Assembly: GCA_024704765.1 (NCBI GenBank)
Contig: JAKMXF010000171.1
Location: 1-9,405, forward strand
DNA from: Oopsacas minuta
Taxonomy: Eukaryota > Animalia > Porifera
Reading direction: 5' to 3'
DNA: 9,405 bases
Shown: positions 1 through 9,405 of the stretch, one piece after another
Layout: every line of letters starts with the position of its first letter
Numbering within the stretch: the first letter of the stretch is position 1
Position numbers and translations under genes: made by a program
Notes under the pieces: model-generated
Told to the model about the DNA's origin: nothing
The model's database searches: none
The model's input: only the letters and a program-made list of their open reading frames with translations

Positions 1-1
1 A

Positions 2-157
2 CGATCTGTAGATATTCTCCGTAATGTGAGTCTACTGAGACAAGACAGAGGGGGACTAATACAGACACGAGAACAGTATCACTTTCTTTACAAAACTATA
101 TGTGCATATGCTAGATATCTCAATAAGCGAGGAGAGGAAATGAATGATGTTATGTAA
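2..157 (+). CDS. Final coding exon (5'-partial) of an upstream protein tyrosine phosphatase: Q-loop and C-terminal helix, R7/STEP-like
   Basis: Frame 2 reads RSVDILRNVSLLRQDRGGLIQTREQYHFLYKTICAYARYLNKRGEEMNDVM*, with stop TAA at 155-157. It contains the classical PTP motif-10 pattern LRxxRxxxIQTxEQYxF. Not in the ORF track. Confidence 0.92.
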   Translation, partial: RSVDILRNVSLLRQDRGGLIQTREQYHFLYKTICAYARYLNKRGEEMNDVM

Positions 158-1080: not shown

Positions 1081-1565
1081 ATGGCAAATGTATTCGTGTA
1101 TTTGAAACTTTGGTTGCTAACTATATTAGTCGGAGGGATATGGATAGTATCCAACGCTCAATTAAGTGGGAATATCAAGAATACTGAACGGGTCAATATT
1201 AATAATTTGACTAGTTCTACTGCTTCTCTTAATTCTACGACTGATTATGCTCCATCTTCTGTGTCTTCCATACACAGAGATCAAACATCTCTATATACAC
1301 CCCAGGCGTCTATTCCTACACATAGTTATGCATCCACTTCAATATCTGTTACTAATACCACTAGTATTAGCAATGTGACTAGTTCTTCTGCTTCTCTTAA
1401 TTCTGCCACTGATTATGCTCCATCTTCTGTGTCTCCCATACACAGAGATCAAACATCTCTATATACACCCCAGGCGTCTATTCCTACACATAGTTATGCA
1501 TCCACTTCAATATCTGTTACTAATACCACTAGTATTAGCAATGTGACTAGTTCTTCTGCTTCTCT
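1081..1565 (+). CDS. Receptor PTP exon 1, part before the gap: signal peptide plus Ser/Thr-rich mucin-like tandem repeats
   Basis: ATG at 1081. Hydrophobic N-terminus (LWLLTILVGGIWIV) with a probable SNA|Q cleavage near residue 26, then S/T-rich repeats up to the N at 1566. Linkage to the downstream exons crosses a gap and is inferred. Confidence 0.75.
1204..1565 (+). repeat. Coding tandem repeat, 168-bp (56-aa) unit, about 2.15 near-identical copies, truncated by the N
   Basis: Units start at 1204, 1372 and 1540 (exact 168-bp period): N(L/V)TSS(T/S)ASLNS(T/A)TDYAPSSVS(S/P)IHRDQTSLYTPQASIPTHSYASTSISVTNTTSIS. Only a few substitutions between copies. Confidence 0.97.
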
Positions 1566-1566
1566 N
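1566..1566. other. Single N, probably an assembly gap placeholder
   Basis: The N falls inside the third repeat unit. The reading frame changes across it, and the downstream sequence starts mid-NIDO domain. Confidence 0.8.
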
Positions 1567-1932
1567 AGTCTGGAAATGATGCAGTCCATGATTCAGTGAT
1601 AGAGGAGGCTACACAGCTGTCTATTTCACACGCTAATGCTGATACTAACTTCAAAGCTCTTGCTGTTATTGTAGCTACGTGGTCAGAAGTAGTACCCTGG
1701 GGGCATCAGAGGGTATATGCAGGAATAAACACATTCCAAGCTGCCATAGTTACAGATTACAAAGACAGTTATGTTCTCTACGGCTACAATTGTGGGGATA
1801 TGTCATGGTCCAGTAGTGCTACATATCCTACCTCCCCTGTAATTGGTTTTACCGCTAGAGGAACCCTTTACGACAATCATTACCTATCTTATAACAAAAA
1901 TTCTCACAGCATTAGTTGTGTGCTGCAGAAAG
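1567..1932 (+). CDS. Receptor PTP exon, part after the gap: NIDO domain, C-terminal portion
   Basis: Frame from 1569 reads SGNDAVHDSVIEEATQL...VIVATWSEV...NTFQAAIVTDYKDSYVLYGYNCGDMSW...VIGF. These match the NIDO motifs ATW, NTFQ-x-x-x-x-TD and W...GF. Donor G|GTAAGT at 1933, phase 1. Confidence 0.88.
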
Positions 1933-2124
1933 GTAAGTAAGTATAAATTTTCCAATGTGCAATTTTACTAACATTTTCAATTCAACTAATCACTCAGTTG
2001 TTATGTATGGACAGTGTTACCTGCACAAACGAGCTGTCAGAGACGCCGAAAAAGGCTATCCCGTTTCCCTCTTTCTAACAAATTCCCCGTTTGTGGAGGT
2101 TTCACTGTATTCTCTCTTCTCTAG

Positions 2125-2389
2125 ATGGTCTTGCTGTTATTGGGTACAAGATATCTCTTTCAACAGCTGAATCAGATGAAATGTGTATCAAATGGCTGGC
2201 GGATGACATCAATATACAGAGTAACTTACCCTCCTTAGCAATTAGGGCAGATCCCTGTCCATGTAATTTATTCCAAGCTAGAAGAGACTCCAGATTTAGA
2301 TTTGACTATGTTACTTATATTACATCAACATATCAAGAAGATGTTATATGTTATGTGTCAAGATTTGATACTGAGGGTCTTTATCAGAG
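2125..2389 (+). CDS. Receptor PTP exon: end of NIDO and start of AMOP domain
   Basis: Acceptor ttctctcttctctAG ends at 2124. Reads DGLAVIGYKIS...CIKW...PCPCNLFQARRDSRF...QR, matching the AMOP signature CPC-x-x-x-QA-x-x-D-x-RF. Donor AG|GTTTGT at 2390, phase 2. Confidence 0.85.
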
Positions 2390-2511
2390 GTTTGTATGTT
2401 GAAAAATTATATCTTATTAATCGCCAAATGAGTATAAATTTGACTGTCCGTCTTTTGTTTGTCTTACGATAGTCCACTGTATCGAGTCCATATAAATACT
2501 GTATCGTGTAG

Positions 2512-2840
2512 ATGCTGTTATGATGTGAATTCAGATTCTGCGTTTGCTATATTTCTATCTTCTTCACAACTCACTCCATTGACTACTTCCGGCAATCAGA
2601 GAGGTTCTATCCTCTCTAGTAACCCCGTATTTTATCCCAGTGAGAGCCATCAGCAATACACAGAGAGAGATGAAGAAGGGTATGTACAGTGTTGTTTGTT
2701 GTCTAACAAGTGTGAAGTGTTCTATAGCAGGAGACCTAGTAGAGATTGTACTGACTATGAATTCTTACCTTTCACTTGGGGGTTTGGTGATCCACATGTT
2801 ATTTCAATGGATGGATTTGTGTATACTTTCAATGGAATTG
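2512..2840 (+). CDS. Receptor PTP exon: AMOP domain and start of VWD domain (GDPH)
   Basis: Splicing restores QRCCYD. Reads CCLLSNKCEVFYSRRPSRDCTDY...FGDPHVISMDGFVYTFNGIG. Donor G|GTGAGT at 2841, phase 1. Confidence 0.92.
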
Positions 2841-2903
2841 GTGAGTTATAATTATATGCAAATTTGTTGTTCAATTAATATATTTACTCAATACTTTGTA
2901 TAG

Positions 2904-3169
2904 GAGAGTACTGGTATTTGTTCCCAGTGGAACAATGTGACTTCCAAGTACAAACTCGTACACAACCAATCAGAGATACAGAAGCAACTGTATTCACTTC
3001 TATAGCAGTTAGAATCAATAACTGTTCTACTGTGTTTGTGTCTCTGTTGGGCAGAGATGATCTGTCTCTATTTGTAGACCAACAGAATCGGACAGATGAT
3101 ATTCATTCAAGTAAGGAAATCATGGATGATTGTGTTAATATTGAGTATACAGAGCCTAATTCTACACAG
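2904..3169 (+). CDS. Receptor PTP exon: VWD domain
   Basis: A 63-bp intron (2841-2903) joins to give the VWD motif TFNGIGEYWYL, followed by FQVQTRT. Donor CAG|GTCAGT at 3170, phase 0. Confidence 0.9.
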
Positions 3170-3223
3170 GTCAGTATGATATAATTTATAGATTATTATA
3201 TTTAAATTTTAATGCATTTTTAG

Positions 3224-3510
3224 AAATCAGAAATTAGTGTAGCGTATAGAAATGGAGCTTTCATAAATCTAAGAGCAGACAATGACTTGATTGCTATATC
3301 TGTATCTCTCCCTGACAGCTGTAGAGACAGAACTAGTGGACTTATAGGTCAGTGGGATGGAGACATGAGTAATGACCTGTTGATGAGGAATGGTACTCTC
3401 CTGTCTCAGAATGTGACTGATAGAGAGAAGGAAGAGTTTGCTGATTCTTGGAGGATAACACAAGATGAGAGCTTTATGATGTATGAGACAGGAAACTATT
3501 CTACTTACAA
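3224..3510 (+). CDS. Receptor PTP exon: VWD C-terminal part
   Basis: 54-bp intron (3170-3223). Reads KSEISVAYRNG...RTSGLIGQWDGDMSNDL...FADSWRI, matching the VWD GLxG and F-x-x-SW motifs. Donor AA|GTAAGT at 3511, phase 2. Confidence 0.9.
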
Positions 3511-3577
3511 GTAAGTTAATATGTTGAGTGTATCTCTAAATATTCATAGTTGAATTGTTCTTATTACTGTATTATAG

Positions 3578-4257
3578 CCCAGACTATACACCTTCTATCT
3601 ACTTGGACGAATTTCTACAGAATGCTAATATAACTACAGAAATACAAGCATTGTGTAATGGCAATCAAATCTGTCTCTTTGACGCTGTCGTGACTAATGA
3701 CACTTCTGTTGCCATGGGAACCATATTCATATCTGAAGAATCTGAGGAGACAGTGAGAGTAGGTAACAACATCCCTCCTCTCATTCAGACACCTCTCCTA
3801 CTGTTCCTATCTCTGGACAACCTGACCACTTTTGAATTTAACGTGACTGATGAAGACGAATTCTCAGTTAACTACGCTCTCTCTCCTCAGTCTGTGTTTA
3901 CTGATATTCTGCTACACAACCTGACACAGTCTGTGTTTGAGTTACAGCTGAGATTGATTCATATACCTGACTCTATGAATATGACAATAATTGCAAATGA
4001 TTCTATCGGAGTGAGTCTAGTTAGTGTGTATGTGGTTGTGTGCCATTGTGAGAATGGAGGTTACTGTTCAGATAATCCATCTGGTACAGATAGTGTAGGA
4101 GACAGCGGTTATATCAGATCATCTTGTCAGTGTCCTCTAGGCTATGAGGGTGTGTATTGTTCTGATATTATTCTAGATCCATGTTTGCAATCAGTTTGTG
4201 AAGTTGAAACTTGTCCAGCTGGTACTGAGAAGAATGACAATTCGTTGAGATGTGAAG
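3578..4257 (+). CDS. Receptor PTP exon: post-VWD Cys region, probable beta-sandwich (Ig/cadherin-like) linker, EGF domain and a partial EGF
   Basis: 67-bp intron (3511-3577). Reads CNGNQICLFDAVVT (typical post-VWD segment), NIPP...FNVTDED...ANDSIG, and CHCENGGYC...CQCPLGYEGVYC. Donor G|GTGAGT at 4258, phase 1. Confidence 0.88.
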
Positions 4258-4337
4258 GTGAGTGTATGTGTCAATAATATTTATTATGAATCTTCCAAAT
4301 TTACTTATTTAATACGTACCAAGTCACAATGTACTTC

Positions 4338-4383
4338 GCATTAGAGAGAAAATGGTTTATATTTTGCTTCTACTCTCTAATGC
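4338..4383. repeat. Perfect 11-bp inverted repeat with 24-nt spacer in intron 4258-4539
   Basis: GCATTAGAGAG (4338-4348) and CTCTCTAATGC (4373-4383). Confidence 0.8.
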
Positions 4384-4539
4384 AACATTAAACTATTATT
4401 GCTTTAGTTACAGGCTGCCAATTTGAGTTGTTGGCGGTTTTACATAGCATATATTGATGTATACGTACACTTTTTCCTGTGAATATGAACAAACTATTTC
4501 ACTATCTGTAATTTGATAGTTTAATGTTTATCTATCTAG

Positions 4540-4716
4540 ATATTGACGAGTGTGCTCTACTTTGTAATCAAACACACCAAATTTGTGTTAACACATATTC
4601 TAGTTACTTATGTACTTGTGAGGCTGGTTATGAAATTATTGATGACGTATGTGTAGATGTTGATGAGTGTAGTATGACTATCTCTCCTTGTCAACATACT
4701 TGTACCAACACTATTG
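4540..4716 (+). CDS. Receptor PTP exon: calcium-binding EGF domains
   Basis: Acceptor tctatctAG at 4539. Reads DIDEC...[10 protein letters not shown] and DVDEC...CTNTIG, the cbEGF consensus D-x-D-E-C and C-x-N-x4-Y-x-C. Donor G|GTTCGT at 4717. Confidence 0.9.
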
Positions 4717-4776
4717 GTTCGTATTATATGATTTGGAATAGTTAGATGTTATTAATGTTACGTATCGTTTCTATAG

Positions 4777-5090
4777 GTTCTTACAACTGTAGCTGTGATA
4801 TGTATTACAGTTTAGAACCAGATATGACAACTTGTAGAGGAGTTAATGTAATTGATTGTGGTACAACACCTCCTGACAACTGTGGGGTTGATTCCTGCAT
4901 TTTAGTAGAAACAGAGTTAGTTTGTGCATATTGTGAGAGAGGAACAGAATTGAGCAGTAGTGGGAGATATTGTATTGATTTAGATGAATGTGCATTACAA
5001 CCTGATATTTGTCCTGTAAGCTCAGAATGTATCAACGAATATGCTTCATACTACTGTGTATGTAATCAGGGATATGTTCAGGATAATAAG
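4777..5090 (+). CDS. Receptor PTP exon: EGF and cbEGF domains
   Basis: 60-bp intron (4717-4776). Reads GSYNCSC...DLDECALQPDIC...CINEYASYYCVCNQGY. Donor AAG|GTAGGA at 5091, phase 0. Confidence 0.9.
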
Positions 5091-5106
5091 GTAGGACTAC
5101 TCTATA

Positions 5107-5239
5107 CAGTCAACTCCCGTTATAGCGAAATCTGAAATTTTATAAGTGTAGTCCCATACCGTAAAAGTAACATATTTAATCGGGTATATCTAAGTAGTTA
5201 TCGCGGTCCCTTGAGCTTCGATATAACGGATGTTGATTG
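5107..5239. mobile_element. 133-bp MITE, Tc1/mariner superfamily (pogo/Tigger-like), in intron 5091-5280
   Basis: TIRs are CAGTCAACTCCCGTTATAGCGAA (5107-5129) and the reverse complement of 5217-5239, CAATCAACATCCGTTATATCGAA, matching at 19/23. TA flanks both sides (5105-6, 5240-1). Removing the element plus one TA leaves a 55-bp intron, the typical size in this gene. Confidence 0.85.
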
Positions 5240-5280
5240 TAGTTTATAATAAAACATTAGAATACTGAGTTTATATTTAG

Positions 5281-5428
5281 AGTATCTGTGTTGATGTTGA
5301 TGAGTGTATTGATGTTATTCCAGTTTGTGAGCCCTCTCAGATATGCTTCAACACAGAGGGTAGCTTCATATGTGCTGGATACTGTTACCTACCTAATTAC
5401 TACATACTTCCTAATGGAATATGTGGAG
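5281..5428 (+). CDS. Receptor PTP exon: last cbEGF domain (frame not shown in the ORF track)
   Basis: Reads SICVDVDECIDVIPVCEPSQICFNTEGSFICAGYCYLPNYYILPNGICG. Acceptor tatttAG at 5280; donor G|GTAATT at 5429, phase 1. Confidence 0.9.
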
Positions 5429-5492
5429 GTAATTATAATTATGAATAAAGTAATTATTCTGTTGTTAATATTTATTATATACCGCTATGTAG

Positions 5493-5819
5493 TTGGTGTT
5501 GGTAATGTGACAAGAGTTCCAGATGAGACTGAGCAATTAACAATTACGTTTACGTTGAGTATTGATGAGTTGGAGGAACGCTTGGATACAACTGGACTAT
5601 CACTCTCTACTCTCTTCTCAACTCTCAATGACTCTCTATTCACTCCCTTACAAGATATACAATTCTCATATTCTCAGACTACAGACGGTAGACTAAAGCT
5701 GATACTGATTTCAGATAGTTTCCAAGTAGACCCATTTCTTGTGACTGAAACTCTAAAAACCAGTCTTATCTCTGATTGGGCACCTTATGCTGCTTACGTC
5801 ACTCAAGTCTCTGCTGCAA
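5493..5819 (+). CDS. Receptor PTP exon: about 109-aa Cys-free membrane-proximal extracellular domain of unknown fold
   Basis: 64-bp intron (5429-5492). Open frame VGVGNVTRVPDETEQLTITFTL...VTQVSAA. Donor A|GTAAGT at 5820, phase 1. Confidence 0.8.
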
Positions 5820-6163
5820 GTAAGTTGGTATACTCATATTATCATACATAACTAATTACACGTAAGGTCTACGATAATGCATAAATTATGTGAAAAGTGT
5901 TTTGTTTACCAAGTAAATTCAATTCTCTTTTATGTAATATATCTAATGTGGGTGTGTTTAGATTGAATACTATAGAATTCTAATGATAATTATTGAATTC
6001 TCTTTTGACCTCTGTTATGTATAATTATAATATAATATATATTACTATGGAATTATTTCATAATTATCTAATTTCTTTGAATATTATTCACACAAAAGTT
6101 TGAAGTTTGTCTTCACAATTTTTCCTCTATAGTTTTATTATGTTTTCTGATTAGTTATACCAG

Positions 6164-6344
6164 TGGTTACACCTACAGACTCCCTCTCTCTATCTACATT
6201 TCTTGTTATTGCTCTATGTTGTGGAGGATTTATAGTTCTCTTATTACTCGGGCTATCTTGTGTATGGGCATTCTCTGCTAGCAGAATTACTTGGAGGAAG
6301 AAAGAGAAGGATGATTCTATTCATGAAGAATTGCTCAGCGAATT
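6164..6344 (+). CDS. Receptor PTP exon: transmembrane helix and stop-transfer sequence
   Basis: Acceptor tataccAG at 6163. Hydrophobic FLVIALCCGGFIVLLLLGLSCVWAF (about 6199-6273) is followed by RITWRKK. Donor TT|GTGAGT at 6345, phase 2. Confidence 0.88.
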
Positions 6345-6445
6345 GTGAGTAATATAACAAATACATATAGTAATACTACTATAGCTATCTCCCGTATCAC
6401 TGATTACCTTCTTGATTGGAACTTAGGAATTTCTGGTATTATATA

Positions 6446-6514
6446 CAGGGGTGGTACCAATATGCAGCATTGCTGTTATCAGCTAACGATAGAAACTGCC
6501 ATTAGCTATCCCTG
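6446..6514. mobile_element. Possible degenerate 69-bp hAT-type MITE in intron 6345-6682
   Basis: Termini are CAGGGGTGG and CTATCCCTG (reverse complement CAGGGATAG, 7/9 match). Flanking 8-mers ATTATATA (6438-6445) and ATTATACA (6515-6522) match at 7/8, like a TSD. The AT-rich background weakens this. Confidence 0.35.
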
Positions 6515-6682
6515 ATTATACATATACGTCATTTAATACTCATTGGTAGTAGCTACTGAAATAGAGCATTTGGTAACACTTGAGCTAATTTGATTAAGAA
6601 ATTCAAATAGAAAGTTTTAACAATTCTAACAATTTTTATCGTTAGATATGAATCTATGTTTGATTTCAATTCTTGTATTTAG

Positions 6683-6879
6683 GAAAAAATTGAAAGATAC
6701 ACGAGCCATAGTTTCACGTCCTGAAAAGGATACAGCAGCCTCCAATTTCCCCAATTGGCCTAAAGGAATTATCAAATCAAATCGCCTCAGCTGTTACCCT
6801 CTCTCCTACCTCCTGGCTGAAGATCCTCCAATTAGGATATATGAAGAATTCGATAGTGTTCCTATGCATTTAGCTACAG
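6683..6879 (+). CDS. Receptor PTP exon: juxtamembrane region and first helix of the PTP domain
   Basis: Acceptor gtatttAG at 6682. Ends IYEEFDSVPMHLAT, matching the EF-x-x-(I/V)P helix that precedes KNRY in PTPs. Donor G|GTAGAA at 6880, phase 1. Confidence 0.82.
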
Positions 6880-6947
6880 GTAGAATTCATCAACATACTA
6901 TTATTATTATTGTTATTGTATTATCTGACTATATCGCTTATTTGTAG

Positions 6948-7164
6948 TTGAAGATATTCCTCCTGCTTGTGAGCTGAAAAATCGTTTCACGAATATCTTA
7001 CCTCCTCCCCACTCCAGGGTACCTCTCTTCCTCAAGTATGGACTTCCTAACTCTGACTACATTAACGCTAACTTTATTCGGGGCTACAACATGGTACCTA
7101 GAGTGTATATCGCTACACAGGCACCTATGTTCTCTACAGAGCAGGACTTCTGGAGAATGGTATG
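6948..7164 (+). CDS. Receptor PTP exon: PTP motifs 1-5 (frame not shown in the ORF track)
   Basis: Reads [73 protein letters not shown], containing KNR(F), DYINA, YIATQ(A)P and DFWRMVW. Donor TG|GTGAGT at 7165, phase 2. Confidence 0.95.
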
Positions 7165-7212
7165 GTGAGTTCTGCTGGCATCTTAGAATTTATGTGATTA
7201 GTGAAAATCATA

Positions 7213-7392
7213 CAGTGGCGTCTGCCTCTATCAGCAATTCGTCTAATAGCGAAATCCGCATATTTGCAACTTTTTTCATAGACAAATAGTGCACTTTTGT
7301 ATGTTAAATAGGATGAATAATGGCAAATTCGTGAACATACTAGCTTAGGAAATTCATGCAAAATATGATTTGCTAATAGGCGAACTCAATTG
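7213..7392. mobile_element. Degenerate 180-bp pogo/Tigger-like MITE in intron 7165-7506
   Basis: TA|CAGTGG...CAATTG|TA termini with imperfect inverted repeats. Left TTCGTCTAATAGCGAAATC pairs with right GATTTGCTAATAGGCGAA. It shares the 11-mer ATAGCGAAATC (7246-7256) with the first MITE (5122-5132). Confidence 0.5.
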
Positions 7393-7506
7393 TATCTAAT
7401 TATGTTTAGAGTTTGTTTACTTTTCGAATTGTATTTCCTCATTTTGTAATATTTACTAATCAAATTACTATATTCTTCTTTCATTATCTAATGGATAATT
7501 CCCTAG

Positions 7507-7696
7507 GGAGCAGAATACAAAGGTAATCATTATGTTGACAGAAATGGTAGAACGCTCCAGAGAGAAATGTGTTCCCTACTGGCCTGACAAAGATATTCTA
7601 ACTTCTATTCGCTTCGGCGACATTGAAATAATCTCTAAGAATAAAATTGTGAGAGAAGATTATCAAATAAATGAATTTATCTTGAAACATTTGCAT
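7507..7696 (+). CDS. Receptor PTP exon: PTP motifs 6-7
   Basis: Reads WEQNTKVIIMLT...EKCVPYWP...FGDIEI...LKHLH, containing IxMLT and KCxxYWP. Donor CAT|GTGAGT at 7697, phase 0. Confidence 0.95.
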
Positions 7697-7889
7697 GTGA
7701 GTTCATCAGCATGTTATTACATACTTATTGAACTGTATTCCTTATTATATATTTAAACAAATATTTGGAAATTTATCCTATTCCCAATTGTCCTTTAATC
7801 TGACTATGGTAATATTAACACACGATTTGCACACAAGAAAATATATGCAGCTATACATCCTATTATAAAGATATATTCATTACTGCTAG

Positions 7890-9071
7890 TTAGAAGATAT
7901 AACACATATCCTCTCCTAAACAAGCGAGAGTTACTTCCCCATTCTTATTGACGGAAATCCCTCCTAGAAATGGAACAGAAGGGCCACAAGGTATTTGGTG
8001 AATAGGATTTCCCTGAGGATCATATATGTGGATACAGCGAGTATTTTGATTGCATATAAGAATATTTCCGTTTCTGTCCACTGTGAAGAATTGTGGTGAT
8101 ATATTCCCAACGTTAGGAATCAAGCTCTTTAACAAGTTTCCGCCTCTGTCGAATACTTTAACTAGTATTTCATCACAATCCAATACATATATATTACTGC
8201 CAACTACTTTCACATCTTGCGGAGACTTCAGGGATTCTCTAATCTCTCCTTTAGGATAGAATGACTCGAATATGTGTACTTTCTTCTGACCTGTATCAGC
8301 TATAAACATTCTACCTTGTTTATCCACATCAATTCCTGCTGGTTTGGCTGTAGCTAGTCTTGGATCTGTTCTTCTGTTGTCTAGCATTCTACTCTGTTGT
8401 AGCTCTCCTTTCTTATTGAAAACGGATACACGACCATTCTCCGGCTCTGTCACATACACAATTCCTTTATTCGCCTTTACTCCCCATGGTTGTGATATCT
8501 TTCCTACCCCTATGGGTTCTAGAGGCTGTCCACTCTGTTTATTAAATACACATACTTGATTATTGATACAGTCAGCCATATATATCTTGTTATCACTTGA
8601 ATCACAACCACATACCATACCCTCTTGTCCCCGACCGATTTTACGTATCGGAGTAACTTTCTTAGCATAATCTGTCAGAGTTACATATTTAACTTCAAAG
8701 AAATTGGTTAAACTCGTGAATATAGATTGGTTGTATTTAACCTTAGCTCTCACAGTCTCTTTTCTATTTTGTAATTCAGTTAATTGTAGGTTAGCCATCG
8801 TCATCATTCCTCTCTGACAGAACCTCACATTTCTTGCATTACATTTGTATGCGTCTCTCAAATGTCCCCGTACTCCCTGTAGATCTTCCAATTCTCGTAA
8901 ATGAGCCTGTTCAATCTCCACGTAACTCCTTTTGTACTCTTTCATCGCTAAGTCAAAAGCAGTTTTCTCATTTAATATTGTAGCATATACACTTTCTAAA
9001 TATCTTTCAAATTCTAATCGTTTCTCTCTGATATCTTCATCAATGTTGAAATTGTTTGAAGGATAAGACAT
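7890..9071 (-). CDS. Intronless coiled-coil + NHL-repeat beta-propeller protein (TRIM-NHL-like, no RING/B-box), 393 aa, nested in a PTP intron
   Basis: ATG at 9071 to TAA at 7890. The N-terminal ~125 aa are helical and charged. The C-terminus has NHL blades: IYMADCINNQVCVF, PWGVKANKGIVYVTEPENGRVSVF, PAGIDVDKQGRMFIAD, PQDVKV..NIYVLD, PQFFTVDRNGNILIC. Confidence 0.9.
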   Translation of the reverse strand: MSYPSNNFNIDEDIREKRLEFERYLESVYATILNEKTAFDLAMKEYKRSYVEIEQAHLRELEDLQGVRGHLRDAYKCNARNVRFCQRGMMTMANLQLTELQNRKETVRAKVKYNQSIFTSLTNFFEVKYVTLTDYAKKVTPIRKIGRGQEGMVCGCDSSDNKIYMADCINNQVCVFNKQSGQPLEPIGVGKISQPWGVKANKGIVYVTEPENGRVSVFNKKGELQQSRMLDNRRTDPRLATAKPAGIDVDKQGRMFIADTGQKKVHIFESFYPKGEIRESLKSPQDVKVVGSNIYVLDCDEILVKVFDRGGNLLKSLIPNVGNISPQFFTVDRNGNILICNQNTRCIHIYDPQGNPIHQIPCGPSVPFLGGISVNKNGEVTLACLGEDMCYIF

Positions 9072-9313
9072 GGTGTTTGTGTCGTGTTAGAGTTCCCAAA
9101 AATATCTTATATTTATATGAAATATGATAATTTGATGTTACGTTATATTACTCAAAATTATTGGAGATAAACAGCGTATTTTTGTGAGTAATATTTGATC
9201 AATAATACACAATTTCTGCCACATAAATATGTTTACTGCAGATTTAGTTAAATTTCCCGGTTGAGGACAATTAAATCTCTCAACCATTTCTATTGCTGAA
9301 TTAATAAATTTAG

Positions 9314-9405
9314 ATCGATGAAGTTCACGAGGTGTCTCACTACTGGTACAGGAAGTGGCCTGAATACGGGGTCCCTGACAATCCCAACTCACTCGTTACC
9401 TTGTT
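9314..9405 (+). CDS. Receptor PTP exon (3'-partial): general-acid loop, WPE variant of WPD
   Basis: Acceptor aatttAG at 9313, phase 0, matching the 7697 donor. Reads IDEVHEVSHYWYRKWPEYGVPDNPNSLVTL, with WPEYGVP at 9356-9376. Confidence 0.92.
   Translation, partial: MDEVHEVSHYWYRKWPEYGVPDNPNSLVTL

Follow-up and report, generated by a model that had tools for sequence, protein, structure and literature searches.

A receptor phosphatase with a MUC4-type ectodomain

Does the 9,405-nt stretch of contig JAKMXF010000171.1 from the sponge Oopsacas minuta (hereafter the window, meaning the whole stretch analysed) carry one receptor, in which the ectodomain of a membrane mucin is joined to a tyrosine phosphatase, or two neighbouring genes? 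And, if it carries one, is this combination new, is it conserved, and how might such a protein work? Our results suggested that the window very probably contains the greater part of a single, expressed gene, whose product is a type I receptor protein tyrosine phosphatase (PTP) with the ectodomain of MUC4 and of the so-called mucin-like proteins (MLPs). We hold the structural part of this statement (gene structure, expression, domain content and conservation) with still higher confidence. The predicted protein begins with a signal peptide and serine/threonine (S/T)-rich repeats, followed by NIDO, AMOP-type, VWD (with the GDPH motif), C8-3 and Ig-like domains and about six EGF/calcium-binding EGF (cbEGF) modules; a ferredoxin-like membrane-proximal domain, one transmembrane (TM) helix and a single classical PTP domain complete it. 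The coordinates of all features are collected in Table 1.

The window has the composition of AT-rich eukaryotic DNA (31-39% GC in 500-base windows). In the rebuilt gene model, and as a previous sequence-only reading of this stretch had proposed, the 15 exons downstream of a one-base assembly gap are joined by 14 GT-AG introns with consistent phases into a single open frame with 0 stops, compared to 75 and 152 stops when the joined exons are read in the other two frames. The frame itself stood, and its length, previously put at about 1340 aa, became 1347 aa when the start of exon 11, which encodes the TM helix, was moved from 6164 to 6155, three codons upstream and in frame. Upstream of the gap, the ATG at 1081 opens an open reading frame (ORF) of 161 aa, in agreement with the approximately 160 aa expected there.

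RNA-like contigs join the mucin and phosphatase exons

Four sequencing runs were mapped on positions 3450-9405. The type of one of them, X4, is not annotated; it behaves as RNA, with zero intron depth, and shares its sample with two DNA-like runs. Its depth was 0 in the introns and 580-860 in most exon bins, and was even over the EGF, TM and PTP exons. The X4 contigs, which have 0 mismatches to the window, contained the GT..AG joints of introns 5-9 (3510->3578, 4257->4540, 4716->4777, 5090->5281 and 5428->5493) and of introns 11, 13 and 14 (6344->6683, with 65 nt on the short side, 7164->7507 and 7696->9314). For intron 10, a 765-nt X4 contig spans exons 8-9-10 and ends with a 12-nt overhang past 5819. 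Since this overhang, TTATACCAGTGG, matches the window only once, at 6155-6166, directly after an AG, exon 11 starts at 6155. Exon 12 is tied to exon 13 by a 16-nt overhang (intron 12). Thus, joints or overhangs for introns 5-14 lead from the EGF exons across the TM exon to the PTP exons, as the sequence-only reading had foreseen, and because the RNA-like contigs join the TM exon on both sides, to exon 10 and to exon 12, we read the locus as one gene and not two.

Could a short-tailed MUC4-like mucin gene and a separate cytoplasmic PTP gene nevertheless lie side by side here, joined by eye or by an assembly error? Long intron-like gaps (5820-6154 and 6345-6682) do flank the TM exon, and the joint of intron 10 is a 12-nt overhang only. 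However, the RNA-like joint 6344->6683 has GT..AG borders and a 65-nt short side, no in-frame stop and no ATG-led start for a separate PTP are present, the phases fit, and the same order was found in three other assemblies (loci L001, L002 and L003, described below). Moreover, DNA contigs of two runs are continuous over 5761-6966, so that this region is no assembly chimera. The existence of two genes is largely refuted, and we give it hardly any probability.

The ectodomain is that of the MUC4-like proteins

Pfam was run exon by exon, with bit cutoffs of 25 for NIDO, 25 for AMOP and 22.9 for VWD. NIDO (PF06119) matched over profile positions 57-164, its N-terminal third falling in the assembly gap; L001 carries 31 further residues, in the aligned frame, upstream of the NIDO start of the window. 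VWD (PF00094) matched exon 5 (1.3e-5, 26 bits), with the GDPH motif at the start of the domain. C8-3_MUC4 (PF23263) matched exon 6 with 36.6 bits, and EGF_CA matched exons 7, 8 and 9 (3.5e-9, 4.9e-10 and 9.3e-9, respectively; 35.8-39.9 bits). Between C8-3 and the EGFs lies an Ig-like (He_PIG-like) module, and He_PIG is found at the matching place in P0005, a Ptychodera mucin-like protein.

The AMOP profile (PF03782) gave a partial match of 19.1 bits (positions 2-46), below its cutoff, and was sub-threshold in L001 too. A 3-round jackhmmer search started from the linker between NIDO and VWD (model aa 116-300) matched residues 573-755 of protein P0163 (9.5e-25), whose Pfam-defined AMOP domain, at 576-689, lies inside this match. 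The same search also matched bat mucin-4 (P0162) at 1837-1976 (4.6e-9), between its NIDO and VWD. Moreover, MUC4-like proteins share the Cys pattern of the linker, and the region from NIDO to the end of VWD (model aa ~20-500) aligns as one envelope with many of them. On the strength of the envelope alignment, the Cys pattern and the transitive jackhmmer match, the linker is confirmed, at the level of sequence comparison, as an AMOP-type domain. The NIDO-AMOP-VWD(GDPH)-EGF architecture claimed earlier was thus recovered, by Pfam or motif for NIDO, VWD, GDPH, C8-3 and the EGFs and, with Pfam sub-threshold, by profile search for AMOP; the EGF array stood as well, with a count of about six instead of about seven modules.

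Note that PF03782 gave no match with E<=0.1 on bat mucin-4 (P0162) and none with E<=0.001 on the frog relatives P0014 and P0016. The profile misses the AMOP of mammalian and frog MUC4-type proteins, so architecture searches based on PF03782 will miss such domains.

The tandem repeat of the S/T-rich region stops at the N in position 1566, and the true copy number may be higher than the 2.2 copies seen. Since this 96%-identical repeat runs right up to the N, the gap probably marks a collapsed repeat array.

Exon 10, at the other end of the ectodomain, gave no Pfam match, SEA included, and has no GSVVV motif. An AlphaFold2 (AF2) model, for which four relatives served as alignment, predicted a ferredoxin-like b-a-a-b-b-a-b fold (pLDDT 75). 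Foldseek searches with this model in the PDB and the Swiss-Prot AFDB returned only generic ferredoxin-like folds (TM 0.4-0.5), with no SEA chain among the top matches. A SEA domain was considered for this exon on account of its SEA-like topology; as the model matched generic ferredoxin-like folds only, we do not use that name.

The cytoplasmic tail carries a single PTP domain

Y_phosphatase (PF00102) matched exons 13, 14 and 15 (68.6, 39.1 and 21 bits) over profile positions 4-156 of 234, and the part of the PTP domain inside the window ends with the WPE loop and makes up the first ~60%. Together with the RNA-like joints that lead from the TM exon, these matches bear out the proposal of a TM helix and a cytoplasmic PTP in one frame. 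Exon 13 shares 89% aa identity with L001. In the relatives (L001, both copies, L002 and L003), the last exon encodes WPEYGVP ... VHCASGTGRTG ... QTxxQYHF and a stop ~25 aa later, the Q-loop of L001 copy A excepted; because the stop follows the Q-loop at this distance, the relatives have a single PTP domain. KNRF, ATQAP and WPEYGVP are conserved in all five copies seen and, judged from the alignments, WPE and KNRF are conservative variants, not losses.

The best PDB matches of the domain are classical PTPs, namely PTPRE, PTPRA, PTPRS and LAR by summed score and PTPRR, PTPN7 and PTPN5 by single-domain score. As the two scores favour different subtypes, the PTP subtype was left unassigned.

A conserved and tandemly duplicated family

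A search with exon 6 among 1.84 billion representatives returned 72 proteins, the three closest being exon-sized ORFs from ENA/Logan assemblies. L001 contains two tandem copies of the gene, copy B spanning from NIDO to the PTP stop; L002 contains its 3' half, with the same nested NHL gene (see below); and L003 contains a compact copy that starts at exon 4 and reaches the stop. In all three, exon order and intron positions coincide with those of the window gene. The ratio of nonsynonymous to synonymous substitution rates (dN/dS) against these relatives was 0.15-0.29 for the ectodomain, 0.28-0.38 for the juxtamembrane domain and 0.05-0.19 for the PTP domain. The window itself shows a tandem pair, since its bases 1-157 are the end of a paralogous PTP gene, 920 bp before the ATG at 1081; at the nt level they are 76-78% identical to the ends of the L002 and L003 genes. 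These sequences indicate that the family is tandemly duplicated and under purifying selection in several glass-sponge-type genomes. As to the origin of the relatives, the named protein closest to the product of a neighbour gene in L001 is one of Oopsacas minuta, with 57% identity, and all others have <=40%.

Some further observations concern the relatives themselves. In L001, copy A has an in-frame stop in the Q-loop (4713-4721, QT*DQYHF) and is a truncated or decaying copy. Before the NIDO exon of copy B, positions 5689-6875 encode two Ig domains (Ig_3, 1e-11) and a weak FN3-like match. The presence of Ig/FN3-like exons where the window gene has mucin repeats suggests that N-terminal cassettes may be swapped within the family. 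In L002, positions 8975-12326 hold a second, rearranged partial copy with AMOP, VWD and exon-6-like pieces, whose exon-6-like ORF runs into a fragment resembling the end of exon 14 and then into a second NHL gene (+); this partial copy looks like a duplication remnant. Positions 13554-20498 of L002 are occupied by an uninterrupted ORF of at least 2702 aa that has no Pfam match on record and runs off the locus.

Tandem copies, in the window and in L001, are also what one would expect if the gene were a cassette within a large and rapidly diversifying family of receptors that serve the sponge in immune, symbiont or self/non-self recognition, with a shared PTP tail and shuffled ectodomains. The MUC4-type module would then be a binding surface and not a sensor of glycocalyx or force. 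The Ig and FN3-like exons that replace the mucin repeats in L001 copy B fit this idea, as does an ectodomain that evolves 2-4x faster than the PTP domain. However, ectodomain dN/dS is still well below 1, and hypervariable exons were not seen in the sequences compared. We consider this explanation rather unlikely.

Much less likely still is that the window copy is a pseudogene, decaying after its duplication from a functional member of the family. Recent paralogs exist, the Q-loop of L001 copy A is interrupted, a joined form without 7171-9306 occurs in the DNA runs, and the 3' end of the copy lies beyond the window. Against these stand 1347 open codons, even expression depth, correct splicing with 0 mismatches to the window, and dN/dS below 1 against the relatives.

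Two observations on the runs touch on these paralogs. Alternative RNA-like overhangs at 3510 and 3622 mismatch the window, and at least one near-identical paralog is expressed. In addition, the DNA-like runs X1 and X5 join 7170->9307, and the RNA-like X4 joins 7165->9313, with 30 nt on one side each. A paralog or an allele without exon 14 and without the NHL gene could give such joints, and so could a unitig branch; we treated them as unitig branches to a paralog, not as isoforms.

The architecture is new among receptor PTPs

Is the combination known elsewhere? The full-length matches of exon 6 were MUC4-like or 'mucin-like' proteins of vertebrates, amphioxus, Ptychodera, starfish, Lingula, an anemone and the sponge Sycon, and a PTP domain was absent in all 72 matches of this non-exhaustive search. 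A profile made from such proteins and the sponge exons gave 94 MUC4-like matches among 5.8 billion clusters, of which the 8000 candidates sharing most words were scored; members from Trichoplax, a coral and Corticium were included, and PF00102 was present in 0/94. In the literature, a non-exhaustive search found nothing that pairs AMOP, NIDO or VWD with a tyrosine phosphatase or with a sponge, and the glass-sponge genome papers PMC10280926 and PMC10282587 make no mention of phosphatase or mucins; a literature search on glass sponges likewise gave nothing on receptor PTPs. Conversely, the modules of the classical receptor PTPs (FN3, Ig, MAM, carbonic-anhydrase-like and RDGS) gave no Pfam match on any exon of the gene, whose sole Ig-like part is the He_PIG-like module, common to MLPs.

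The sequence-only reading had described the gene as a mucin-phosphatase chimera outside the R1-R8 subtypes of receptor PTPs, for which it knew of no characterised example. The ectodomain indeed falls outside R1-R8, and in the literature and protein searches made, which were not exhaustive, no such receptor was described or annotated. The gene is, however, no one-off, as L001-L003 carry a conserved, tandemly duplicated family. Among receptor PTPs its domain architecture is new, and it is conserved in genomes of glass-sponge type.

Receptor PTPs are classed by their ectodomains, and how an ectodomain controls its phosphatase is still poorly understood. The gene extends the repertoire of receptor PTP architectures past the R1-R8 scheme and implies that an enzyme-linked receptor can use a MUC4 module as its input. 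It offers a simple system in which to ask whether mucin shedding or glycocalyx crowding regulates a phosphatase, and it adds to the signs of a large, shuffled set of receptor PTPs in glass sponges.

Possible mode of action and output

Several points weigh against our interpretation of the locus. At the 5' end, the link from the mucin-repeat ORF to the NIDO exon crosses the assembly gap at 1566, and introns 1-4, which lie outside the RNA comparison, are based on their splice signals, on a frame that stays open and on the conservation of intron positions. The joint of intron 10 is supported by the 12-nt contig overhang. Near-identical paralogs exist, with DNA-run depth at 2-4x over 3622-4265, 6833-7429 and 9221-9405, so that some RNA-like contigs could derive from a sister copy. 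At the 3' end, the window ends upstream of the CX5R loop and the active site of this copy lies beyond it. The motifs WPE, KNRF and QAP depart from the canonical WPD, KNRY and QGP-type motifs.

With this in mind, and by analogy with the protein families involved, from which cleavage, glycosylation, catalytic activity and biological role are all inferred, the following mechanism may be proposed. The ectodomain would be cut at GD/PH, probably as in MUC4, leaving a heavily glycosylated outer subunit held non-covalently on the membrane subunit. The phosphatase would change in position or clustering when a ligand binds, when crowding occurs or when the outer subunit is lost, and this in turn would change local phosphotyrosine (or phosphoinositide) levels. 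In this wording, with cleavage and control of the phosphatase by binding, crowding or shedding, the mechanism is put forward tentatively, and we would not bet on it at even odds. The role of a glycocalyx or adhesion sensor, which the sequence-only reading had considered possible, is likewise conjectural. A bolder version, a force- or shedding-gated receptor phosphatase whose GDPH-cut outer subunit is shed or pulled by contact, flow or microbes and read out by the WPE-type PTP, possibly on phosphoinositides, appears improbable to us. If true, no other animal would have a counterpart to this phosphatase, and its bearer would be a syncytial organism in which many standard signalling pathways are missing.

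What the tail would do as an enzyme is a separate question, since the KNRF, QAP and WPE variants mean that the output could be that of a full phosphotyrosine phosphatase, a weak one or a lipid phosphatase. The catalytic Cys and Arg of the relatives are intact and the general-acid Asp is replaced by Glu (WPE); for this reason the enzyme is likely to be active, with reduced or shifted activity. An alternative, which contests only the output part of our interpretation, is that the cytoplasmic domain is a phosphoinositide phosphatase similar to PTPRQ, or a weak, substrate-holding domain similar to the membrane-distal domains of RPTP alpha and epsilon, and signals through lipids or as a scaffold. 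According to a passage of PMC5336234, the change from WPD to WPE in PTPRQ shifts the substrate from phosphotyrosine to inositol phosphate. In line with this alternative, the variant motifs are found in every copy, under strong purifying selection, and the D2 domains of PTPRE and PTPRA align with WPE at the same place. On the other side, Cys, Arg and the Q-loop are intact in the relatives, Glu can still donate a proton, and the PTPRQ structure 4ikc came only 38th among the 60 matches listed for exon 13. We regard this alternative as a possibility to be taken seriously, if not the favoured one, and keep a PTP of reduced or shifted activity as the likely output.

Features of the window

Table 1. 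Position, strand and supporting evidence of the features found in the 9,405-nt window.
Position	Strand	Feature	Evidence
1-157	+	3' end of upstream paralogous PTP gene (RSVDILR..QTREQYHF, stop 155-157)	Frame-2 translation; Pfam 210-232 of 234
1081-1565	+	Exon 1, 5' part: ATG, signal peptide, S/T-rich region (44% S+T), 6 N-glycosylation sequons	ORF, composition
1197-1565	+	168-bp (56-aa) S/T-rich tandem repeat, 2.2 copies, 96% identical	Tandem Repeats Finder score 689
1566	.	Assembly gap, single N; remainder of the repeat array and first third of NIDO are lost here	
1567-1932	+	NIDO exon, post-gap part	Pfam NIDO 9e-14, 52.3 bits; GT donor
2125-2389	+	Exon 2: first half of AMOP-type domain (C..W, PCPC, C.Y)	Sub-threshold Pfam AMOP and jackhmmer
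2512-2840	+	Exon 3: second half of AMOP-type domain (CC, CC..S..C, RP...C..Y), VWD start with GDPH (2786-2797)	
2904-3169, 3224-3510	+	Exons 4 and 5: VWD	Pfam VWD on exon 5; MUC4-like alignment; RNA-like joint 3510->3578
3578-4257	+	Exon 6: C8-3_MUC4, Ig-like (He_PIG-like) module, first EGF	Pfam 2.8e-9; RNA-like joints on both sides
4540-4716, 4777-5090, 5281-5428	+	Exons 7, 8 and 9: calcium-binding EGF array	Pfam EGF_CA; RNA-like joints of introns 6-9
5493-5819	+	Exon 10: juxtamembrane extracellular domain, predicted ferredoxin-like	AF2 model
6155-6344	+	Exon 11: TM helix (6190-6273), then basic stop-transfer residues	Overhang; joint 6344->6683
6683-6879	+	Exon 12: cytoplasmic juxtamembrane segment	RNA-like joint, 16-nt overhang; conserved in L001, L002
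6948-7164	+	Exon 13: PTP start, KNRF (6977-6988), ATQAP (7112-7126)	Pfam Y_phosphatase 8e-19
7507-7696	+	Exon 14: PTP middle	Pfam Y_phosphatase 8e-10; joints 7164->7507, 7696->9314
7890-9071	-	Intronless 393-aa coiled-coil and NHL-repeat gene, nested in PTP intron 14	ORF; Pfam NHL 3.9e-14
9314-9405	+	Exon 15, cut by the window end: WPE loop WPEYGVP (9356-9376)	Pfam 3e-4

The NHL gene nested in intron 14 is expressed, as an unspliced RNA-like contig covers 7819-9079, and is not part of the receptor. L002 has the same nest, but L001 and L003 have a short intron at this place, with no gene inside. NHL homologues with 51-56% identity were found in about six ENA assemblies, and nested genes are common in glass sponges (PMC10282587).

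Intron 8 contains a 137-bp element (5105-5241) with 25-nt terminal inverted repeats that are 84% complementary. In the DNA runs its depth was ~6000, compared to ~100 in the flanking DNA, with many loose ends, and it is probably a high-copy repeat resembling a miniature inverted-repeat transposable element (MITE). A related-looking piece may sit in intron 13, where loose ends were seen at 7350.

Comparison with known systems

The closest likeness is to MUC4 and the MLPs, with which the sponge gene shares NIDO, the Cys pattern of the AMOP-type linker, the GDPH-containing VWD, C8-3_MUC4, the Ig-like module, the cbEGFs, one TM helix and, if the ORF before the gap belongs to it, the S/T-rich repeats; its NIDO-VWD block has ~25-34% identity to frog, amphioxus, starfish and sponge MLPs. 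The difference lies in the tail. MUC4 has a short non-catalytic cytoplasmic tail, whereas that of the sponge gene has ~290 aa with a classical PTP, a domain found in 0 of the 72 plus 94 relatives.

From the classical receptor PTPs the sponge gene has the type I topology, the order of phosphotyrosine loop, QGP-type, WPD-type, CX5R and Q-loop motifs (the last two seen in the relatives) and the single PTP domain, as in the R3, R7 and R8 types. Unlike them, the sponge family carries KNRF, ATQAP, WPE and HCASGTGR, and shows no clear vertebrate subtype. PTPRQ, of type R3, likewise has WPE for WPD, a single PTP domain and receptor topology, but its ectodomain consists of FN3 only and it is not among the best sequence matches of the sponge gene.

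The idea of a receptor PTP with a mucin-like region is not new, since the N-terminal region of CD45 is O-glycosylated, and CD45 and CD148 are the bulky, heavily glycosylated receptor PTPs of the kinetic-segregation model. The sponge protein resembles both in joining a large, partly mucin-like and (as predicted here) glycosylated ectodomain to a phosphatase, and this likeness suggests positioning that depends on size or glycocalyx as a possible mode of action. Note, however, that CD45 and CD148 have no NIDO, AMOP, VWD or GDPH, that CD45 has two PTP domains, and that their ectodomains have no sequence relation to that of the sponge. Finally, P0165, a predicted protein of Hydractinia symbiolongicarpus, also places a NIDO ectodomain on phosphotyrosine signalling in an early-branching animal; it differs in having six NIDO domains and a tyrosine kinase, not a phosphatase, and no VWD, C8-3 or EGF match.

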